A DNA stretch of 64,000 bases from Oikopleura dioica (taxonomy: Eukaryota; Animalia; Chordata). A program made the translations under genes and the position numbers. This document shows positions 9,942 through 19,460 of the stretch, piece by piece; position 1 is the stretch's first letter; every line of letters begins with the position of its first letter. Location of the stretch: positions 3,968,001-4,032,000 of the forward strand of contig OU015567.1 in assembly GCA_907165135.1 (NCBI GenBank). Direction: 5' to 3'. Under the pieces are notes generated by a model that did no database searches, was not told the origin of the DNA, and saw only the letters and a list, made by a program, of their open reading frames with translations.

Positions 9942-12933
9942 CTAGTTTTGTGGATCCATAATGATCTTGCAGGCTTTGCCGGACAAAAGCGCATCGTAGG
10001 CGGTTTTGAAGTCGGACAGGGGGACTCGATGAGAGACAGTCATTTCTATTGAGGTTTAATGAAAAGGAAGATGATAGTGATGACAGACCTGGTTGAACCT
10101 TTCCACTTTCGATCAATTTTTCGCACTCCTCCCAAGTGTGGAAAATCTTTCTTCCGTGGACGCTGTGAATCTCCAAGCTCTTGAAAATCAGATCGGGCAG
10201 GGGATCCTCAAACGTCACTGCCGACTTAGGCAGGCCAACGAGGCCGAGTTTCCCGCCTTTTCGCATGTATTTCAGACATTTTGACAGGGTCGGAGCATGC
10301 CCAGAAATTTCGCAGATTCGGGGAATTCCCTCGCCATTTGTTGCTTTCATGATGGTTTCGTGGAGGTCTTCTTTTGTCACATCAATCACTAGAATCAGTT
10401 TTAAAGGAGCAAATAAATAAATAAATAAAAAAGAAGGTGTGGACCCTTATGCTTTGAATTATGTAACTATCAAAGGGTATATTTACGAAGTACTTCTATT
10501 TGGGTCAGAGGACCAAAATCTCTACTCCTTGATGTTTGTTTTTATGGCCTCTATTTGTCGAAATTTGTTGCACTCAGAAGAGACAGTACTTGAATAAATC
10601 ACAGTCCACGTCTAGAAAATGAGCTTTTTCGGGACTTGCAGTTTGCGAAAAATTATAAAAGCAGCACTTTTGAGCATTTTTGCTGTTTCGGCGCTTTTTG
10701 GAATAGCCCTAGCAGCTGGAGTTACAACAGTGAAAATAACAGAGGATAAAACTAAACCCGAAGAGATAACTACTTCTATTCCGGGCTTTCCGGACGGACC
10801 AGAAGGAGTCGATTTTGCCTGTAACGGCAGCGCTAGAATCCCGATAGATAATATTCTTTGGGAGAGAAATGATCTTTACCAAGGAGAAAACTCAGGCAAA
10901 AATCGATTCTTTCCGACAAATCGTCTTAATTTCTTTTAGATTATGCCGATTGGTGCATTTTCATCCCGTCTGCTCCTCGATCCCGACTTCCATACAAAGC
11001 CCAATGCGCTCTATACGATGCTTTACCCATTTCAATCCACGACGATCTCACTCAAAAATCCTTTGAAATCGCAAAATCAGACATCGATGATATTCAAATC
11101 ATCCAATTTGGCGGCGAAACAAATCGAAGAGGGGAGTTTTCCTGGTTCGACGGAACGTAAGAAAAACTTTTTAAGAATCGTTTTCATATTTCAAGTTTAG
11201 AAAGATTGATTTTATGGAAAGTGAACTCGCAAGCGGAACTGGCGAACTCTACCTTGACTCTGCCGGATGGGAGGTCAAATCTGTCATGCGAAATGTCTCC
11301 GCTCACTTTGCCTGCTACGTTGATCAAAAAGCTCTTACTACAGTTACAAGTACTGCTTCCTCCGCTTCTACGAGCTCATCCAGTCGACCAACTTTGTCCC
11401 CAACAACGACGACATCGAAAACGACTACCACACCGCTGCTAACAACAACGACAACAGAGGAAATCACGTTAGGATGGAGCTATTGCGATTCAGGTACCGT
11501 AGACTCTTCTGATTGTTGATCGAAAAGTCAATAAAATCAAATTCCAGACGCTGACAAAACAAAAATTCTTTGGACAACAACGCCCATTTACGATGGTGCA
11601 AGTGATCAGTTCAAAGACTGGTGTGTTTACATTCCGAGAGAGTCTCGTCAATCTGGACTATCAGTAGACGAGCATTGCGAGCAGTTTTTCGGATCTGGTT
11701 TATCAATTCATGACCAAAACTTGCAAAATTCCATCGAAAGAGGTAAACGAACCTATATGTAAATTTTGATAATTTTTAGTTTTTCGGGAATTTTCTGAAG
11801 TTTCTGTAATTTCTGTTGGCGGCAAAAAAGACGCAAGAAATGAAGACTTCTACTGGCAAGATAACAGGTAATTTGAAAACAAAGACAAAATTCGAGATAA
11901 AATTTAGCGATGTGGATTACAAGAAGCGAGAACTGAATGGATTGACTGTTGGAACCGGAGAACTGGTTTACGCAAGAGCGAACTTTCAAAACGGAAATTG
12001 GGAGCTCACAAAAAATGAAAATACATTGAGCCATTCTCATTTTGCTTGCTATCAGAAGATTCCGGAAAAAGAAGGCTCCGCTGAAATCATAGAAGACTAC
12101 TTTCAACCACTTTTTTGAAAAAAAATCCGTTTTTTTTTTGTAAATAAAAAAAGACTTTTTCAAATCATTTTTTACCTCTATCCGCGCCCATTTTCTCCGC
12201 CAACTCCAATTTATCAGCAATCACATCCGCCGCATAAATCTTCTTAGCTCCCATTCCTCGGGCACACGCAATCGCCAGCAATCCTACCGGGCCGCATCCG
12301 ATTACGAGAAGGTCCTGGCCAACAATGTCGATTCGCTCTAGAATATTGTGGGCGACACCCATCGGTTCAATCAGACAAGCTTGTTCGTCGGTGATGGATG
12401 AGTTGATTGGGTAGAGGTACTTGGAGCTGACATTTGACAGCTCAGAGCAGCCACCCTTAATCCAAAGATATTCAACTGGGAAAAAGGCTCCTTTACCTGA
12501 GTAGTTCCTTTTCCATGCCCATATTGCTTCATCTTATTGCAAATATCACCCCTTCCTGCATCACACATGCAACAATTTTCGCAGTAAAAATGGTTCTCCA
12601 CCGCTACTCGCTGCCTGATTTTATGAGTCGCTTCCGGGCCGCATTTGACCACGATTCCGACGGCTTCATGACCAGGGATGAAAGGCAAAGATGCGATCGT
12701 TCTAGCTACATCATTCCATTTCCACAAGTTTATGTCTGATCCACAGACCGAAACAGCCGTTACTTTTATTTGGCATTCGTCTTGAAAAATATTTTGACTC
12801 TATTGCTTTCGCTTATTTATTTAAAAATTGATATAAGAAGATATTTTCGAAAACCTCCAACAGGCTCATCAATGGGACAATTTTCGTCGAATTCAAATCC
12901 CTCAGCTGGGTCTCTTTTGATTAACGCTCTCAT
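9942..12933 (-). CDS. tdh: Zn-dependent (MDR-family, bacterial-type) L-threonine 3-dehydrogenase, five exons
   Basis: MRALIK..., VSVCGSD, PGHEAVG, HFYCENCCMCDAGRGDIC (structural Zn), IEPMGVAH, VIGCGPVG (NAD-binding), SVHGRKIFHTW, C-terminal GKACKIIMDPQN*. Large intron 10389-12175. Confidence 0.9.
10619..12118 (+). CDS. Membrane-anchored protein with two divergent C-type-lectin-like domains separated by a Ser/Thr-rich linker
   Basis: N-terminal hydrophobic anchor. Two internal repeats: ILW..DWCxxIP..SIHD..GG..FxWxD..GTGEL..GxWE..HFACY. Lies wholly inside the tdh intron. Confidence 0.7.
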
Positions 12934-13069: not shown

Positions 13070-13158
13070 CACGATCAATCCAAACACAGAAGGAGCAGTT
13101 GCTCTTAGGTCAATGATGATGATTAATTTTATTTCCTGCCTGAAAAAGTAGAGCCTCT
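13070..13158 (+). repeat. 89-bp direct repeat, left copy
   Basis: CACGATCAATCC...GAGCCTCT matches 18068-18156 with one mismatch. Confidence 0.95.
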
Positions 13159-14756
13159 GATTTGGCTTCATTATATCCAGATGCTTCATTTTATCCAAAG
13201 CTTCATCCTATCCAATTACTTCATTTCATCCAAATTTTTTTTTGGATAAAATGATGCCTTTGTATAAAATGAAGCTTTTGGATAAAATGAAGCCAATTTT
13301 CAAAAAAATCAGAATTTGGATAAAATGAAGCATATGGATAAAATGAAGACAAAATGTTATCGGAAAAATCTGTGGATATAATGAAGCTTTTGGATAAAAT
13401 GAATCTTTGGATAGAATGAAGCGATGGATGAAATGAAGCAATTGGATAAAATGAAAACTTCATTTTGAATTTCATAAACTGTTGACTCAATAAAGCGTTA
13501 GAATGAAAGGAAGCTCTTGATAAGAAAAATCAGTTTTTGAAAAAAAAAAATATAATCCATACTTCATAGCGGCGTTATTAAAAATGACTTTTTTATTGAA
13601 AGTTAGATCCTGAGTCAGGCTTTTTACACAGAAAGCTTTCATAACTCACGAACTATTGAAGTCATTTTCGTTTTAAAAAATTCATTTTAGCGACAATTCT
13701 TCTTCATCAAACGACCTTAACATCGGATCATCGGATTTCCACGGTTGCGAATGCAAAAACACGCAGTCCTATTACGACATTCGGTTACGCACCAATCGAG
13801 CTACAGTAACAGACTGCAGTTACAGAGGGCCAAAGTAACCGAAAAGTAGATTTCATCATCTGTCTCTTCGTTTTTGGCTATTTCTTGCAGAAACAATCTC
13901 CATGCTGATGAGCACTTCGATCCAGATCGTTTCATTCTGTATTTTTCAATAGAAAAGTCTTATTTGATGAAACAATAAATAGTAACGTCTTCGTTGTTTA
14001 TTAATAAAATTCGCTAATAACAGCACATACTATCAATTTGAACATAATCATAAAAAATTTTATTGAATTCAAGCAAGTAATCTAAAGCCAAAAAGTCTCT
14101 AGATGAAAAAATTATGAGACGTCGTGGCGCTCAGACTGTAAGACTGCGAGACTATAAAAATTAGCAAAAAGTCTCTAGATGGTAATTTATTTCTGATGCA
14201 CGATCAGAAAAGATGTGAAAAGAGAAAAATGCTGTCTCAGGTCAGTGTCTATATCCAAACGAATCCGAAAATTCCAAAAATATTTTTTCCGGGAATCGTC
14301 CGAGTGGGACGCGGACTTTTGGTGTAAAAGGGCCTTTTCTTGTAAATTTGAAAAACACTTTATACGCCAAAATAACATTCCTTATTTATTTTTTCGAGGT
14401 GGATGATTCTTTTATCGTCATTATTGAGCGTTGAAAATAATTTTTTCAAGAAAAAATCAGAATTCGGAATTTTTAAAAATTTGTTTTTTCCATAAAATTG
14501 TTCCTGGAGTTTCTTAATGATTAATTAACGTATGAGATGACGTAAAACATGCTTAACTTTTGTTGAAGATAATTTCGTTACGTCTCTCTAGAAAAAAATC
14601 CTTCAAATTAACAAGAAAAGGCAATTCTATAATAAATTCTTGTAAAGGGGACGGAGAGGGGGGTCGACGAGAATTTTCAGGGTTGATCGTTATTTCGCTT
14701 ATAAAGATAATTCTTGGTGATAAAATATAAGATGACAATATAGGGACTCCCGGAAT

Positions 14757-14807
14757 ATGTCGCGAATGTCGCGAATGTCGCAAATGTCGCAAATGTCGCG
14801 AATGTCG
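14757..14807. repeat. 9-bp tandem repeat (ATGTCGCRA)
   Basis: About 5.5 copies. An inverted partial copy occurs at ~16144-16161. Confidence 0.9.
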
Positions 14808-15330
14808 AAGCAAAAAATAAAATTGAAAACAAAGACATTCTAGAAAATAAGAATTTCCGAATCCCTCGGAACAGTAGGGGCGTGAAAACAGATGTGTAAC
14901 CTGCCAAATCAAGGAGTTTCCTACCAGTTAACCCGCGGAGCGGGCACTTACTTACGATGGTTTCAATATTTCAATATTTCTCGTTTTTACGAAGTTCTAC
15001 CATATTTTATGACTATTTTCGATAATTCGGCAATTTTGTTATTTTATCTACCGTGGGCGAGAGATATCACGACGGAGTCTGAGGGCCCGGGCCGGGGTTT
15101 TGAATATTTCGCGCACATTCAAGTATTTTCCCATGCCTAATGGAGGACTTTTATCTGGTGGAAGACCCAATTGATGGAAGATAGGTCTAACCTAGACTCT
15201 TTAAGATTATTTAATCTTTAACTTATAAATAGATAAAAATTTTAAAAAATCTTGATCATGTGACTCTTGGAGGACCCCTGGAGGACCTTTTCTGGTGGAA
15301 GACCGGCCTTCCTGGAAGACCCTTAAAATT

Positions 15331-15704
15331 CAGCCCCGTTCCATGATTTTTAAATTTAAGGGCTTGACGGCCCTTCGGGCCGTCTCAGCCCCGTTCCATG
15401 ATTTTTAAATTTAAGGGGCTTGACGGCCCTTCGGGCCGTCTCAGCCCCGTTCCATGATTTTTAAATTTAAGGGGCTTGACGGCCCTTCGGGCCGTCTCAG
15501 CCCCGTTCCATGATTTTTAAATTTAAAATGCTTGACGGCCCTTCGGGCCGTCTCAGCCCCGTTCCATGATTTTTAAATTTAAGGGGCTTGACGGCCCTTC
15601 GGGCCGTCTCAGCCCCGTTCCATGATTTTTAAATTTAAGGGGCTTGACGGCCCTTCGGGCCGTCTCAGCCCCGTTCCATGATTTTTAAATTTAAGGGGCT
15701 TGAC
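15331..15704. repeat. 56-bp tandem array (6 full units + 1 partial), each with hairpin GACGGCCC-TTC-GGGCCGTC
   Basis: Units start at 15331, 15386, 15442, 15498, 15554, 15610 and 15666 and are nearly identical. Confidence 0.95.
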
Positions 15705-16298
15705 AATGGCTGGGAACTCCGAGGTGATCAATCTCAGTCCCCAACCCCGCCCACACCCATCGTCTTTAAAATTCAAATTGATCAAGTTTTCAATTATGTT
15801 ATGGTTTTGAATATATTTTTTAATTTAAAGATTTTCTTTGATTATTATTTACAAATTATTATTATTTAGTTTATTTATTATTAAAACAAAATCAAAGTTA
15901 TAAAAATTGAAGGAAGAAGAAGTTTCTAAGGTCAATTATTGAGAGAGGTGAATTGTGAAAAATGTTTCTAGACGGGGGGTTGTTGTTGTTCTTCGCGGAG
16001 GACCCACTCCCACGTGGCGCAAGATGCGCGCCAAAAAGAGCAAAAAGATTGGGACGAGAAAAACACGCGCAAATGCCCCAATCTATTTCGCTCTCCGTCG
16101 TGAAATCTCTCGCCCTCGGTAGAACAATTGCTGTTTTTCGAAATTGCGACATTCGCGACATGGAAGATTTATATTATAAATATATGTAAATATAAATATA
16201 AATAAATATAAATATAAATATATGTATAATATTTTTATATTATACATTAACTAAAAATGTGCTGGGGTCCGGATGTGTATATATAGCATAAAGTAAAA

Positions 16299-16731
16299 GG
16301 CCAATTTCAATAAGGAATCCAAATTCAAAATCCTAACCCCCCATGTATTCATGCTCGTTGGAAAGAGCGTAAAAAGTTACGTCAGAAAAAAATATTTCTG
16401 GTGAAGAGCTATCTTTTTCGGAAAAAATTTTGAAAAAATCGGAAGAAAAATTTTTTTCTAGAGTTGGATATTTCGTATTAAACTCTACCTCGGGTAGGTC
16501 AAGGCGATCATTTTCGTGTATTAAACTCAAATTTTCCATTTGTGGAAAAAAAATGAGAGGGGAACCAAGGTTTTGGACTTTTGGAACTTCAATCACCCGC
16601 CATGACGTCATTGCTGATGACTCAGCCTCTAGAAATATTTTTTTCTGACGTAACTTTTTACGCTCTTTCCAACGAGCATGAATACATGGGGGGTTAGGAT
16701 TTTGAATTTGGATTCCTTATTGAAATTGGCC
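16299..16731. mobile_element. MITE with ~100-bp TIRs starting GGCC, possibly PIF/Harbinger-type
   Basis: 16299-16399 is the reverse complement of 16631-16731. Flanked by AAA on both sides, a possible 3-bp TSD. Confidence 0.7.
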
Positions 16732-16738
16732 AAAGCTA

Positions 16739-16951
16739 ACCCACGCTCATTTGGGGACCGTATATCGGGCCAGGTGTTCACACCAGACTATTTTCAGGAA
16801 AGCTCACCCACGCTCATTTGGGGACCGTATATCGGGCCAGGTGTTCACACCGGACTATTTTCAGAAAAGCTTACCCACGCTCATTTGGGGACCGTATATC
16901 GGGCCAGGTGTTCACACCGGACTATTTTCAGAAAAGCTCACCCACGCTCAT
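16739..16951. repeat. 67-bp tandem repeat (3 full units + partial)
   Basis: Units start ACCCACGCTC at 16739, 16806, 16873 and 16940. Confidence 0.95.
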
Positions 16952-18067
16952 ACACCCTTAAGAATAAGACAAGATAAATTTTATAAGATAAATTTCAAGT
17001 TTTCAGCCATCAATAGACTCCTGCGAACCAAAAAACGGTTGGTGTCACGAATCGACAAAAATCCCGACAAAATTTTGCGTGGAAATTCTCAACCAATCAG
17101 CAGCCTTGATCCGTCGAATCCTGTTGTCGACACGATGCCGAGCCGTAAGCGGAAAAGACCGGTTTCTTTTGCAAACTGATGTATTCATGCCTGTTTTTTA
17201 TCGAAAAAATATAATTGAAATATTTTAATTTATATCTTTTGATGTTTCTTTTGTTGAAATTTCTTACTTTTATTTTAAACAGACAAAAAACAAGGACAAC
17301 AAGCAAAAATGTTTATTTTAAGTAGACTCTAGTATAGTCAGAAAATATTCTTGATTTTAAAAATTCATCGTCGAGTTCGCAAGGTACATTATTATCGAAA
17401 GTTAGTGTTAGGATCGGTATTTCGAAGCTTTTTGCTCGTGCCCGGGAGTGAGCAAATGAAGAAAATGAGGAATTTCTGAGTTTGCGAAAATATGTGAACA
17501 AATACGTAAGGACCCGTTGTTTGCGGAATAATAAACGCCTCTGATGCCTCGTTTTACTAGCTGCACTTGTTTAATTAGACAAAAAGAAATTCAATAGATT
17601 CGTTCGGTATCGGGCGAGAATTCAATTAAAAACTTGAAGAATTACTGAGTGGGGGTCGAGTAGAATATCAAAAATAAAGACAAGTTAAACTGTTTTTTCA
17701 CCTGAAAAATATCGCTTCATTTTATCCATTTGACTCATTTTATCCAAGAACTTCATTTTATACAAAGCATCATTTTATCCATTTGCTTCATTTTATCCAC
17801 TTTTTTAAACGTTAAAATACTAGCTTCATTTTATCCATTGACTTCATTTTATCCAAGTCGTCATCTTATCCAATAACTTCATTAGATACAAATGCTTCAT
17901 TTTATCCATTTTCTGAATTTTTTGAAAAATGGGCTTCATTTTATCCAAAAGCTTCATTATATACAAAAGCATCATTCTATCCAAAAAAAAATTTGGATTA
18001 AATGAAGTAATTGGATAAATTGAAGCTTTGGATAGAATGAAGGTCTTGGATATAATGAAGCCGAATC

Positions 18068-18156
18068 CACGATCAATCCAAACACAGAAGGAGCAGTTGC
18101 TCTTAGGTCAATGATGATGATTAATTTGATTTCCTGCCTGAAAAAGTAGAGCCTCT
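18068..18156 (+). repeat. 89-bp direct repeat, right copy
   Basis: Matches 13070-13158. Ends 21 bp upstream of the lipase ATG. Confidence 0.95.
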
Positions 18157-18177: not shown

Positions 18178-19460
18178 ATGGGTTTCCTTGACTATTTTAA
18201 AGAGACTCTGTCCAACTGCATCAACAGGGATGCGGAGAAATGGATCGAAGAGAATTATCAAGACGTCTCAATTGATAAAATCCTAAAAGTACAATTTTCA
18301 ATTCGGCTAGCTGCGCTTGCTTATTATTCCAATGTAAAAAGTGTTAATATCTTATCCAATTCATTCTGTTTTAAGCATTTTGCCTGCCTCGACAGTGTTT
18401 CTCTAGAAAAGAACAAAAATGATTTTTCCAAACTTTTGCCTGAAAAAATGATTGGGACTGAACTCGATAAGGCATTGGATCAAAAATCTTCAATTATGCC
18501 ATTGGCATAATGCCAATGGCCCATTGCAAATCGCGTCGATTTTCTGTATTTTGAATCCGGTTTCAGTCATCTATGATTTCACTGCTAAAGAGATTCGAAA
18601 TTTTCGACTTCGAAGCTATTCGAGACGACAGAACCGGTTCCGATGCCATCTTAATCTTCGCAAAAGACAAGCCTGTCGATAATGTTGAGGGAAAAACCTA
18701 TGCCATTGTCACCGTCTGCGGGACATTCGAGCTGCAAGACGTCTGGCAAGACATCAAGATCTCCCAAGTTCAGTTTGAAGAAACAGAAGCTCGCGCACAC
18801 AGCGGATTTTATGAATGCTTCCAAGCTCTGAAGCCGGGAGTTGAAAGCTTTCTTGATAAAACTGTCGCTGAAAAAACGGTCGACGAAATTTTGATTGTTG
18901 GGCATTCACTTGGTGGCGCAGTCGCCTCTCTTCTCGGAGCATCGCTAGGATTGGCTTAGATTTTTACAATTTTTAATTTTTTAACATTTTTTTAAATTGA
19001 TATAAAATCAAAACCAAAATTTGAGCACCGAAGTATGAAGGGGAAAATTTCCGAGTAGTGAGTGTTGGTGCTCCGAAAATCGGAAATAAGGCTCTGCAAG
19101 ACTTGTTCAAAGAAAGGTTCAATCATACCGTTCTATTTGAATATGCATTAGTTGTATTTGAAGAGTGAAGAAGCATGTGCGAGTCCGACTAACGAGCGAT
19201 CTTATAGTGAGAATGCCAAATCTTCTGTATTGGTTCAGGAAAGCCTTTTTTTGAATTGACGAAAGAAAACCTTCTTCAGAAATTCAGGCGAAGACCACGA
19301 CCCGACTGACTTCCCCATTTTTGACGAGTCCGACTTTCCCATCGGAAGTCATTTTACTCATCGTGTTTACGTCGGGCTGGAAAAAAATAAAGAAATTATT
19401 TTTAAGAAAAAGTTCGGAAACGCTGTTCAAAAGGCTCAAAAATATCTGCAAGCTCAATAA
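18178..19460 (+). CDS. Class-3 lipase (alpha/beta hydrolase)
   Basis: VCGTFELQDVWQD, AHSGFYEC, IVGHSLGGAVA (GxSxG), VSVGAPKIGN, RVRLTSDLIVRMP. Confidence 0.85.

Follow-up and report, generated by a model that had tools for sequence, protein, structure and literature searches.

A gene-less inverted-repeat transposon family of Oikopleura dioica flanked by target duplications of about 89 bp

Between two Oikopleura dioica genes in the Okinawa assembly lies an inverted-repeat-bounded element of 4,909 bp without genes (Table 1; positions refer to the window, the whole 64,000-nucleotide stretch of DNA analysed). It is flanked by a direct repeat of 89 bp, and the locus raises the question of whether this repeat is a target-site duplication and, if so, whether its length is peculiar to one insertion or characteristic of a transposon family. 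The two repeat copies are identical at 88 of 89 positions, with one T/G difference, and adjoin the element tips at 13159 (GATTTGGCTTCATTATATCC...) and 18067 (...GGATATAATGAAGCCGAATC) with a spacer of zero. Agreement this close, aligned with each tip to the single base, is not attributable to chance, and four other loci show the same arrangement. In the 64.28-Mb genome the 89-mer is present only at this locus, in exactly two copies, which makes it target sequence rather than part of the element. The initial annotation had read the locus as a mobile element bounded by terminal inverted repeats (TIRs) and flanked by a very long duplication of its target, a reading that the abutment at both tips supports. 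We conclude that the element is very probably a copy of a small, transposase-less inverted-repeat DNA transposon family of O. dioica, the integration of which duplicates approximately 89 bp of the target.

Table 1. Coordinates of the element, its parts and the neighbouring genes in the window
Feature	Position	Strand	Description
Zinc-ADH/threonine-dehydrogenase-like (tdh-like) gene, 5' exons	12165..12933	-	ADH_N 3e-11 and ADH_zinc_N 2e-9 on exon ORFs
Left 89-bp target-site duplication copy	13070..13158	.	Last base directly before element tip
Left arm (long terminal inverted repeat)	13159..13589	+	Tip plus ~430 bp common to other family copies at 80-87%
Non-coding interior	13590..17616	.	Patchwork of unrelated repeats; pieces match many other loci
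Nested high-copy repeat	15048..16121	.	>200 genome matches at 86-99%
56-bp tandem array	15330-15704		6.7 units; inside the nested high-copy repeat
Nested 433-bp MITE of another family	16299..16731	.	Inverted ends perfect (101 nt at 100%)
Right arm (inverted copy of the left arm)	17617..18067	-	16 motif copies; tip ...GAAGCCGAATC at 18067
Right 89-bp target-site duplication copy	18068..18156	.	Ends 21 bp before the lipase ATG
Class-3 lipase gene, 5' exons	18178..18959	+	Lipase_3 3e-12 on ORF 18573-18956; ATG at 18178

A genome search with the TIR end, a check that the initial annotation had proposed, revealed around six copies with both ends, one of which has lost a junction, and fragments, amounting to fewer than ten copies of 471 to 4,909 bp. 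At the five unrelated loci with measurable insertions (n = 5, one of them 85/87 rather than 89), the flanking duplications are 89, 89, 89, 89 and 85/87 bp long, consist of local sequence that is different at each locus, and abut the tips exactly. The initial annotation had named the presence of the 89-mer beside this TIR at unrelated loci as a refuting condition; the 89-mer does not accompany the TIR elsewhere, and other copies carry different 89-mers. Two copies (C5:2312198-2313540 and C4:13067235-13069069) have their own flanking duplications with 89/89 identity, an old copy of 471 bp (C4:442489-442959) has one of 80/89, and the flanking repeats of a further copy (C4:5623156-5624743) comprise 85 and 87 bases, a T-run being the sole difference. 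At C3:993767-996368 the right junction is deleted, with 53-63 bp of the repeat kept beside the deletion. The C5 copy is exonic, its duplicated 89 bp encoding about 30 residues, and in a paralogous domain at C1:15764xxx the segment is present once and is followed without interruption by the sequence that lies on the far side of the other duplicate. The duplication of ~89 bp is a fixed property of the whole family and not of one odd insertion. This bears on the suspicion that the repeat is a unique product of local repair or an error of haplotype merging, unrelated to how the element inserts, which draws some support from the use of HaploMerger2 to merge the haplotypes of this assembly (PMC8008620). 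We rejected this reading as almost certainly wrong, because four further unrelated family loci, on three contigs, show a duplication of the same length that adjoins both tips exactly, and the duplications are between 90% and 100% identical, a spread to be expected if the insertions differ in age.

The arms, ~300-430 bp long across the family, are built from about 14 copies each of a 17-18-bp motif with the core CTTCATTTTATCCA, spaced 17-18 bp apart. In the left arm of the window element, four copies face outward and 10 inward, and family arms have four outward and ~10 inward; these copies are plausibly candidate protein-binding sites. The terminal 140 nt of each family arm form a near-perfect, statistically significant foldback, in which a hairpin with a ~65-bp stem begins 3-5 nt from the element end; in the left arm of the window element, bases 13162-13296 can fold as a hairpin of -35.5 kcal/mol (z -8.8). 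Tips and motif positions are conserved in every family copy, and the tip GATTYGGCTTCATTWTATCC, given as GATTYGGCTTCATT... for the window copy, terminates five copies, located on three contigs, at either end.

Terminal hairpins of this kind would also be compatible with a single-strand or rolling-hairpin mechanism, in which the foldbacks would act as the working ends, as they do in parvovirus-type or HUH/Rep-driven elements, and the 89-bp repeat would arise from fixed-extent target-primed synthesis or template switching instead of DDE-type staggered joining. Besides the position and stem length of the hairpins, the fact that no DDE transposase is linked to the family speaks for such an origin. 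However, the duplication length is constant within the family, whereas replication-based duplications, for example at AAV integration sites, are variable in length. Furthermore, no Rep-like gene is associated with the family, and the HUH elements known to us (IS200/IS605, Helitrons) generate no target duplication. We therefore regard a hairpin-ended replicative element as improbable.

The initial annotation had further suggested a composite origin from two older foldback MITEs, independent of each other, that inserted nearby and were later mobilised together with the intervening DNA, and had observed that the TIRs are only ~85% alike. The two arms of the window element are indeed only 89% alike over 151 nt (13159-13309 versus 17917-18067) and ~75% over a gapped alignment of ~400 nt, each arm is itself a foldback, and the interior is absent from the other family members, which have only the arms in common with it. 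Nevertheless, all copies from 471 to 4,909 bp share one two-arm layout with identical motif positions, including 1.3-kb ones with perfect duplications, and their arms are only 84-86% alike even beside an 89/89 duplication. The arm divergence is therefore inherited within the family and gives no sign of age or separate origin. Arms capable of transposing by themselves would be expected to occur as complete single-arm copies with their own duplications, but none was seen: the pieces found that consist of one arm are truncated and unflanked. The interior is accounted for by nested repeats of other families, among them several tandem arrays and a MITE with many genomic copies at 88-98% (Table 1), and it is this interior of other repeats that brings the element to 4.9 kb, compared with 0.5-2.6 kb in its relatives. 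Hence, a composite origin appears highly improbable.

The interior of the window element contains no ORF longer than 142 aa, the two longest ORFs tested gave no Pfam match, and a search of the element for known RNA genes yielded neither Rfam families nor tRNAs. The interiors of the other copies likewise consist of nested repeats of other families, and family-specific interior sequence is limited to gene-less copies, so that the family as found in this assembly is without coding capacity and comprises neither a transposase nor an autonomous copy. Genome-wide, matches to the terminal 20-mer (up to 2 mismatches) and the 14-mer motif core were limited to the gene-less copies described above, fragments and four isolated motif singletons devoid of arrays and flanking repeats; since the 14-mer core is confined to the known copies and these singletons, no further or autonomous copy with these ends is present in the assembly. 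A one-ended copy at C1:66895 leads into non-coding DNA followed by retrotransposon-like ORFs. No flanking duplicate that could represent an excision footprint was present at a 30-bp tip remnant (C1:1972868) or at two fragments (C4:4445523 and C4:3695872), and nine matches to the tip 20-mer in JGI metagenomes were chance matches, none of them with a motif array.

In its conserved shared tips and constant duplication of local sequence the family conforms to class II TIR elements; the cognate transposase of an autonomous relative was not found in this assembly and may lie elsewhere. Like ordinary eukaryotic MITEs, these are gene-less TIR elements that would rely on a transposase in trans. MITEs are short, usually abundant and flanked by 2-10-bp duplications. 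In contrast, the Oikopleura family has fewer than 10 copies of 0.5-4.9 kb with 89-bp duplications, and thus lacks the combination of a size below ~800 bp and a high copy number. It shares with Foldback/Mutator-like elements (Drosophila FB, Meloidogyne Tm1 [PMC3169594] and MULEs) long inverted arms of short tandem subrepeats with foldback potential, a preponderance of non-autonomous copies, and insertion in or near gene 5' ends. However, the duplications of those elements are 9-10 bp long, and the Oikopleura family has no linked transposase, whether a MULE-type enzyme with related TIRs or any other. A link to the MULEs of the same genome was rejected, because the PF10551-positive loci carry unrelated TIRs of 48-66 nt; one such element with a readable junction has a duplication of ~9 bp.

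The longest characteristic duplication lengths that we found in the literature are those of the bacterial IS1202 group, likewise a group-specific trait and called "unusually long" for a TIR element (PMC10132070). At 16-28 bp they are nevertheless far from 89 bp, and IS1202-group elements are prokaryotic and encode their own transposase. IS1549 and IS1634 (IS1634 family) are TIR elements with flanking direct repeats of up to tens to hundreds of bp for which no mechanism is known (PMC2266710); in these prokaryotic elements, which have their own DDE transposase, the repeats of individual copies measure anywhere from 8 to 514 bp, whereas those of the Oikopleura family, found in an animal genome and without a detected transposase, are essentially constant in length. 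Our literature search yielded no 89-bp or comparably long fixed duplication for any eukaryotic TIR element, and no published description of this family. To our knowledge, eukaryotic cut-and-paste superfamilies generate duplications of 0-11 bp, and the ~89 bp observed here is about ten times longer than those known or found described for eukaryotic inverted-repeat transposons.

Based on the anatomy of TIRs plus duplication, the family is most likely a non-autonomous one of the cut-and-paste type, and we propose the following hypothetical integration pathway, in which (i) a transposase acting in trans would pair both element ends; (ii) the 3' ends of the element would be joined to opposite target strands ~89 nt apart, with a 5' stagger; (iii) gap filling would then duplicate the ~89-nt interval. 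Target-duplication length is regarded as diagnostic of transposase geometry. That the length stays constant across five unrelated targets points to a physical ruler within the integration complex rather than to sloppy host repair. A reproducible duplication of 89 bp would set the two strand-transfer points ~30 nm apart along the DNA, which requires target DNA that is wrapped or looped, together with a means of measurement undescribed for any transposase. We know of no enzyme that joins transposon ends 89 nt apart.

A nucleosome could in principle serve as this ruler. According to what Luger reportedly found in 1997, the nucleosome wraps 146-147 bp in 1.65 turns, which corresponds to ~89 bp per superhelical turn, so that two phosphates separated by 89 bp would be neighbours on adjoining gyres, each ~44 bp from the dyad. 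A transpososome with two-fold symmetry might dock at this position and attach the two element ends to one gyre each, after which repair would duplicate exactly one superhelical turn. This would constitute an undescribed mode of integration, and we put it forward tentatively, as a possibility that is on balance unlikely. Each Ty1 insertion creates a 5-bp duplication. Ty1 illustrates that an integration complex can use nucleosome geometry, with two preferred points per nucleosome ~70 bp apart; in contrast to the arrangement considered here, these are alternative sites and not the two joints of one insertion (PMC3545840). If the nucleosome reading were true, Oikopleura populations would harbour a transposase of a new superfamily or a drastically modified version of a known one. 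Identification of the enzyme could yield a new tool as well as a direct means of probing chromatin-guided integration. Elements such as these would be mis-annotated by standard MITE and TIR finders, which search for short duplications.

For an orthologous empty site, exact look-ups with two window ORFs and a homology search with lipase exon 1 gave nothing, and lipase exon 2 retrieved only marine-metagenome relatives with 45-88% amino-acid identity per aligned segment. The longest lipase-bearing metagenome contig (4.5 kb) extends ~2.9 kb upstream of the lipase start and contains no tdh-like gene there; the gene order thus differs, and this contig offers no alignable empty site. Direct repeats 89 bp long should make precise removal of the element by single-strand annealing more likely, a point of relevance in O. 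dioica, which is reported to lack classical end joining. A long duplication would also allow both neighbours of a compact bidirectional promoter to keep upstream sequence, as at the tdh-lipase locus. The ATG of the tdh-like gene (12933) lies 136 bp from the left duplication copy, and subtraction of the element and one 89-mer from the intergenic distance gives 246 bp, close to the ~245 bp estimated in the initial annotation for the divergent spacer that the insertion split. Each gene retained one copy of the 89-mer within its native upstream sequence, which amounts to 225 bp for the tdh-like gene and 110 bp for the lipase gene.

The window element is bracketed by two direct repeats that adjoin its tips with no spacer, and re-measurement of the borders confirmed to the base the order of repeat, tip, interior, tip and repeat proposed in the initial annotation. 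Its arms, the long terminal inverted repeats (TIRs), are inverted and 89% alike across 151 nt from the tips and ~75% alike across ~400 nt with gaps. Whole-genome searches covered the assembly of 64,281,565 bases, whose 19 pieces include one of 17.09 Mb, the longest, and one of 16.16 Mb; the O. dioica OKI2018_I69 assembly is described as 64.3 Mbp in 19 scaffolds, with a longest of 17.1 and an N50 of 16.2 (PMC8008620). In the searched assembly, the window 89-mer occurs twice, both times at the window locus. A search with the left arm yielded a small family of copies (see table) and a few fragments, and duplications were read copy by copy by comparing the DNA left of the left tip with that right of the right tip. 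The duplicated sequences differ without relation from locus to locus. This is the opposite of the 89-mer standing beside the same TIR at unrelated loci, which the initial annotation had considered: the other copies have their own, unrelated duplications. The ~89-bp duplication travels with the TIR; the window 89-mer does not.

Features of the window element, its neighbours and the other family copies (plain numbers are window positions; C1, C3, C4 and C5 are contigs of the same assembly)
Feature	Position	Size	Details
Direct repeat	13070-13158 and 18068-18156	89 nt	88/89 identical; brackets 4,909-bp segment
Element tips	left 13159; right 18067		left GATTTGGCTTCATT...; right ...AATGAAGCCGAATC
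tdh-like gene (zinc-ADH/threonine-dehydrogenase-like)	ATG 12933		minus strand; domains ADH_N, ADH_zinc_N
Class-3 lipase gene	ATG 18178		plus strand; divergent from tdh-like gene
9-bp microsatellite (ATGTCGCGA)	14757-14807		5.7 units
High-copy repeat with 56-bp tandem array	15048-16121; array 15330-15704
Nested MITE of a different family	16299-16731	433 bp	perfectly complementary 101-bp ends
67-bp tandem repeat	16732-16951		3.3 units, 96%; directly adjoins nested MITE
Family copy (window)	C5:3981159-3986067	4,909 bp	duplication 88/89
Family copy	C5:2312198-2313540	1,343 bp	duplication 89/89
Family copy	C4:13067235-13069069	1,835 bp	duplication 89/89
Family copy, old	C4:442489-442959	471 bp	duplication 80/89
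Family copy	C4:5623156-5624743	1,588 bp	duplication 85 vs 87 nt; sole difference T6 vs T8
Family copy	C3:993767-996368	2,602 bp	53-63 nt of repeat remain; right junction lacks 11 nt of the tip and some of the repeat
Family copy, one-ended	C1:66895

Each arm carries four outward-facing copies of a 17-18-bp motif (core CTTCATTTTATCCA) at positions 8, 26, 43 and 61, followed by a T-run and ~10 inward-facing copies to ~position 290, with motif positions conserved from copy to copy. The two arms within one copy are 84-86% alike, even beside a perfect flanking duplication. Low arm identity is therefore a character of the family and not evidence for two MITEs, and the suggestion that the window element is a composite of two old, separately inserted MITEs is not supported. 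The outer 140 nt of an arm fold back into a hairpin that is near-perfect, starts 3-5 nt inside the tip and has folding energies of -35.5 and -36.8 kcal/mol (z = -8.8 and -8.1 relative to shuffled sequences). These terminal hairpins speak for a minor rival explanation, in which integration would follow a single-strand or rolling-hairpin mechanism.

The family combines conserved tips, arrays of a short motif and a long target duplication whose length stays constant although the targets are unrelated. We favour a scheme in which (i) a transposase acting in trans would bind the motif arrays and pair the element ends; (ii) the paired ends would be joined to the two target strands at points that lie ~89 nt from each other and are staggered 5'; (iii) subsequent gap repair would produce the duplication. 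The constant duplication length favours a ruler in the integration complex over variable host repair. The nucleosome, reportedly described by Luger in 1997, holds 146-147 bp of DNA in 1.65 turns, so that one superhelical turn takes ~89 bp and two points at this spacing sit on neighbouring gyres. A nucleosome acting as the ruler is a hypothesis that we regard as rather improbable. The retrotransposon Ty1, with two hotspots per nucleosome ~70 bp apart, shows that nucleosome geometry can be read by an integration machinery (PMC3545840). Alternatively, the ruler would be target DNA wrapped on a large transposase-arm complex rather than on a nucleosome.

The motif core is found genome-wide only in the known family copies and four isolated singletons; the assembly therefore holds no autonomous member with the family's ends. 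MULE-type transposase genes (PF10551) were rejected as partners, since their TIRs are unrelated and the one readable junction has a ~9-bp duplication. Among the MULE-type elements, one of ~3.1 kb at C1:5819841-5822935 (L071:4842-7936; L numbers denote extracted sequence stretches) has a 596-aa open frame; its 48-nt TIRs are composed of a 9-bp unit (ATGGCACGA), and 9 bp of target (GAAGATTTC) are apparently duplicated beside it.

Arm architecture resembles that of Foldback/Mutator-like elements, whereas the 9-10-bp duplication defining these is absent from the Oikopleura family, which has no linked transposase of that kind. Duplications of 8-514 bp are reported for IS1549/IS1634 (PMC2266710), where length is variable, in contrast to the constant length here. 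The longest family-characteristic duplications that we found described elsewhere are those of the bacterial IS1202 group, at 16-28 bp (PMC10132070). The literature was also searched for Oikopleura DNA transposons and for eukaryotic TIR elements with long or 89-bp duplications; nothing relevant came up. We class the family among the TIR transposons, with an integration geometry that has no precedent; should its enzyme prove to be of a new type, the family would merit more than that.

At C5:2312198, the duplicated 89 bp lie inside an open reading frame that begins like a signal peptide and is part of an extensive family of repeated domains (76 genomic matches). A paralogous domain, at C1:15764xxx, contains the ~30 residues that the duplicated stretch encodes a single time, and this segment runs directly into the residues that follow the other duplicate at the interrupted locus (...GQPGDRTFAMF... 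against ...GKPGDRTFAML...). Since the paralogue has the segment once and uninterrupted, the target was single before insertion. In the family to which the interrupted gene (L004:1596-2186) belongs, the domains are repeated in tandem ~190 aa apart, open frames reach 1,826 aa, and a ...NIFHVT.G.N.G.PGDRTFAM... segment is conserved. An orthologous empty site of the window locus was not found among the relatives retrieved, all marine-metagenome contigs. Tara/ENA contigs of a related larvacean (L061, L062) carry a lipase orthologue with 45-88% amino-acid identity per aligned segment. On the longest contig, the ~2.9 kb preceding the start of the lipase hold no tdh-like gene; the divergent tdh-lipase pairing is therefore not conserved, which agrees with the gene-order scrambling reported among O. 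dioica lineages (PMC11067885).

The start codons of the tdh-like and lipase genes lay 246 bp apart before insertion, matching the short spacer (~245 bp) that the element was said to have split, and each gene kept one 89-mer. Counted from the lipase ATG, the duplicated interval spans -110 to -22; native upstream sequence now amounts to 225 bp for the tdh-like gene and 110 bp for the lipase. Three of the five measurable insertions lie at gene 5' ends, namely the window, C5:2312198 (exonic) and probably C4:442489, whose right flank is readable as a first exon; in so compact a genome, this supports targeting weakly. In the five measurable copies, the base just outside the duplication, in the 5'-to-3' direction leading into it, is T at 7/10 boundaries, and A follows the right-hand duplication copy at 5/5 loci; the target may thus be weakly preferred, but five sites are too few to judge.

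The window interior (~13590-17616) has nothing in common with other family members. It contains no ORF >142 aa. A Pfam search with the two longest of the ORFs tested gave no match, nor did Rfam and tRNA searches of the window copy. It consists largely of other repeats, including several low-copy pieces. Elsewhere in the genome, the 56-bp array is expanded to long satellite-like runs (e.g. C1:9744381-9747887, C4:10276592-10279075). Other genomic copies of the nested MITE are 88-98% identical, so its insertion is very recent.

An isolated 30-bp family-tip remnant at C1:1972868-1972899 (L040:601-632), with neither arm nor flanking duplicate, may be what a deletion or an imprecise excision left behind. 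The one-ended copy (L043) lies near a chromosome end and is followed by ~1.8 kb of non-coding DNA and then by ORFs that contain DSGS, an aspartic protease motif of retroviral type, and probably belong to a Tor-like retrotransposon.
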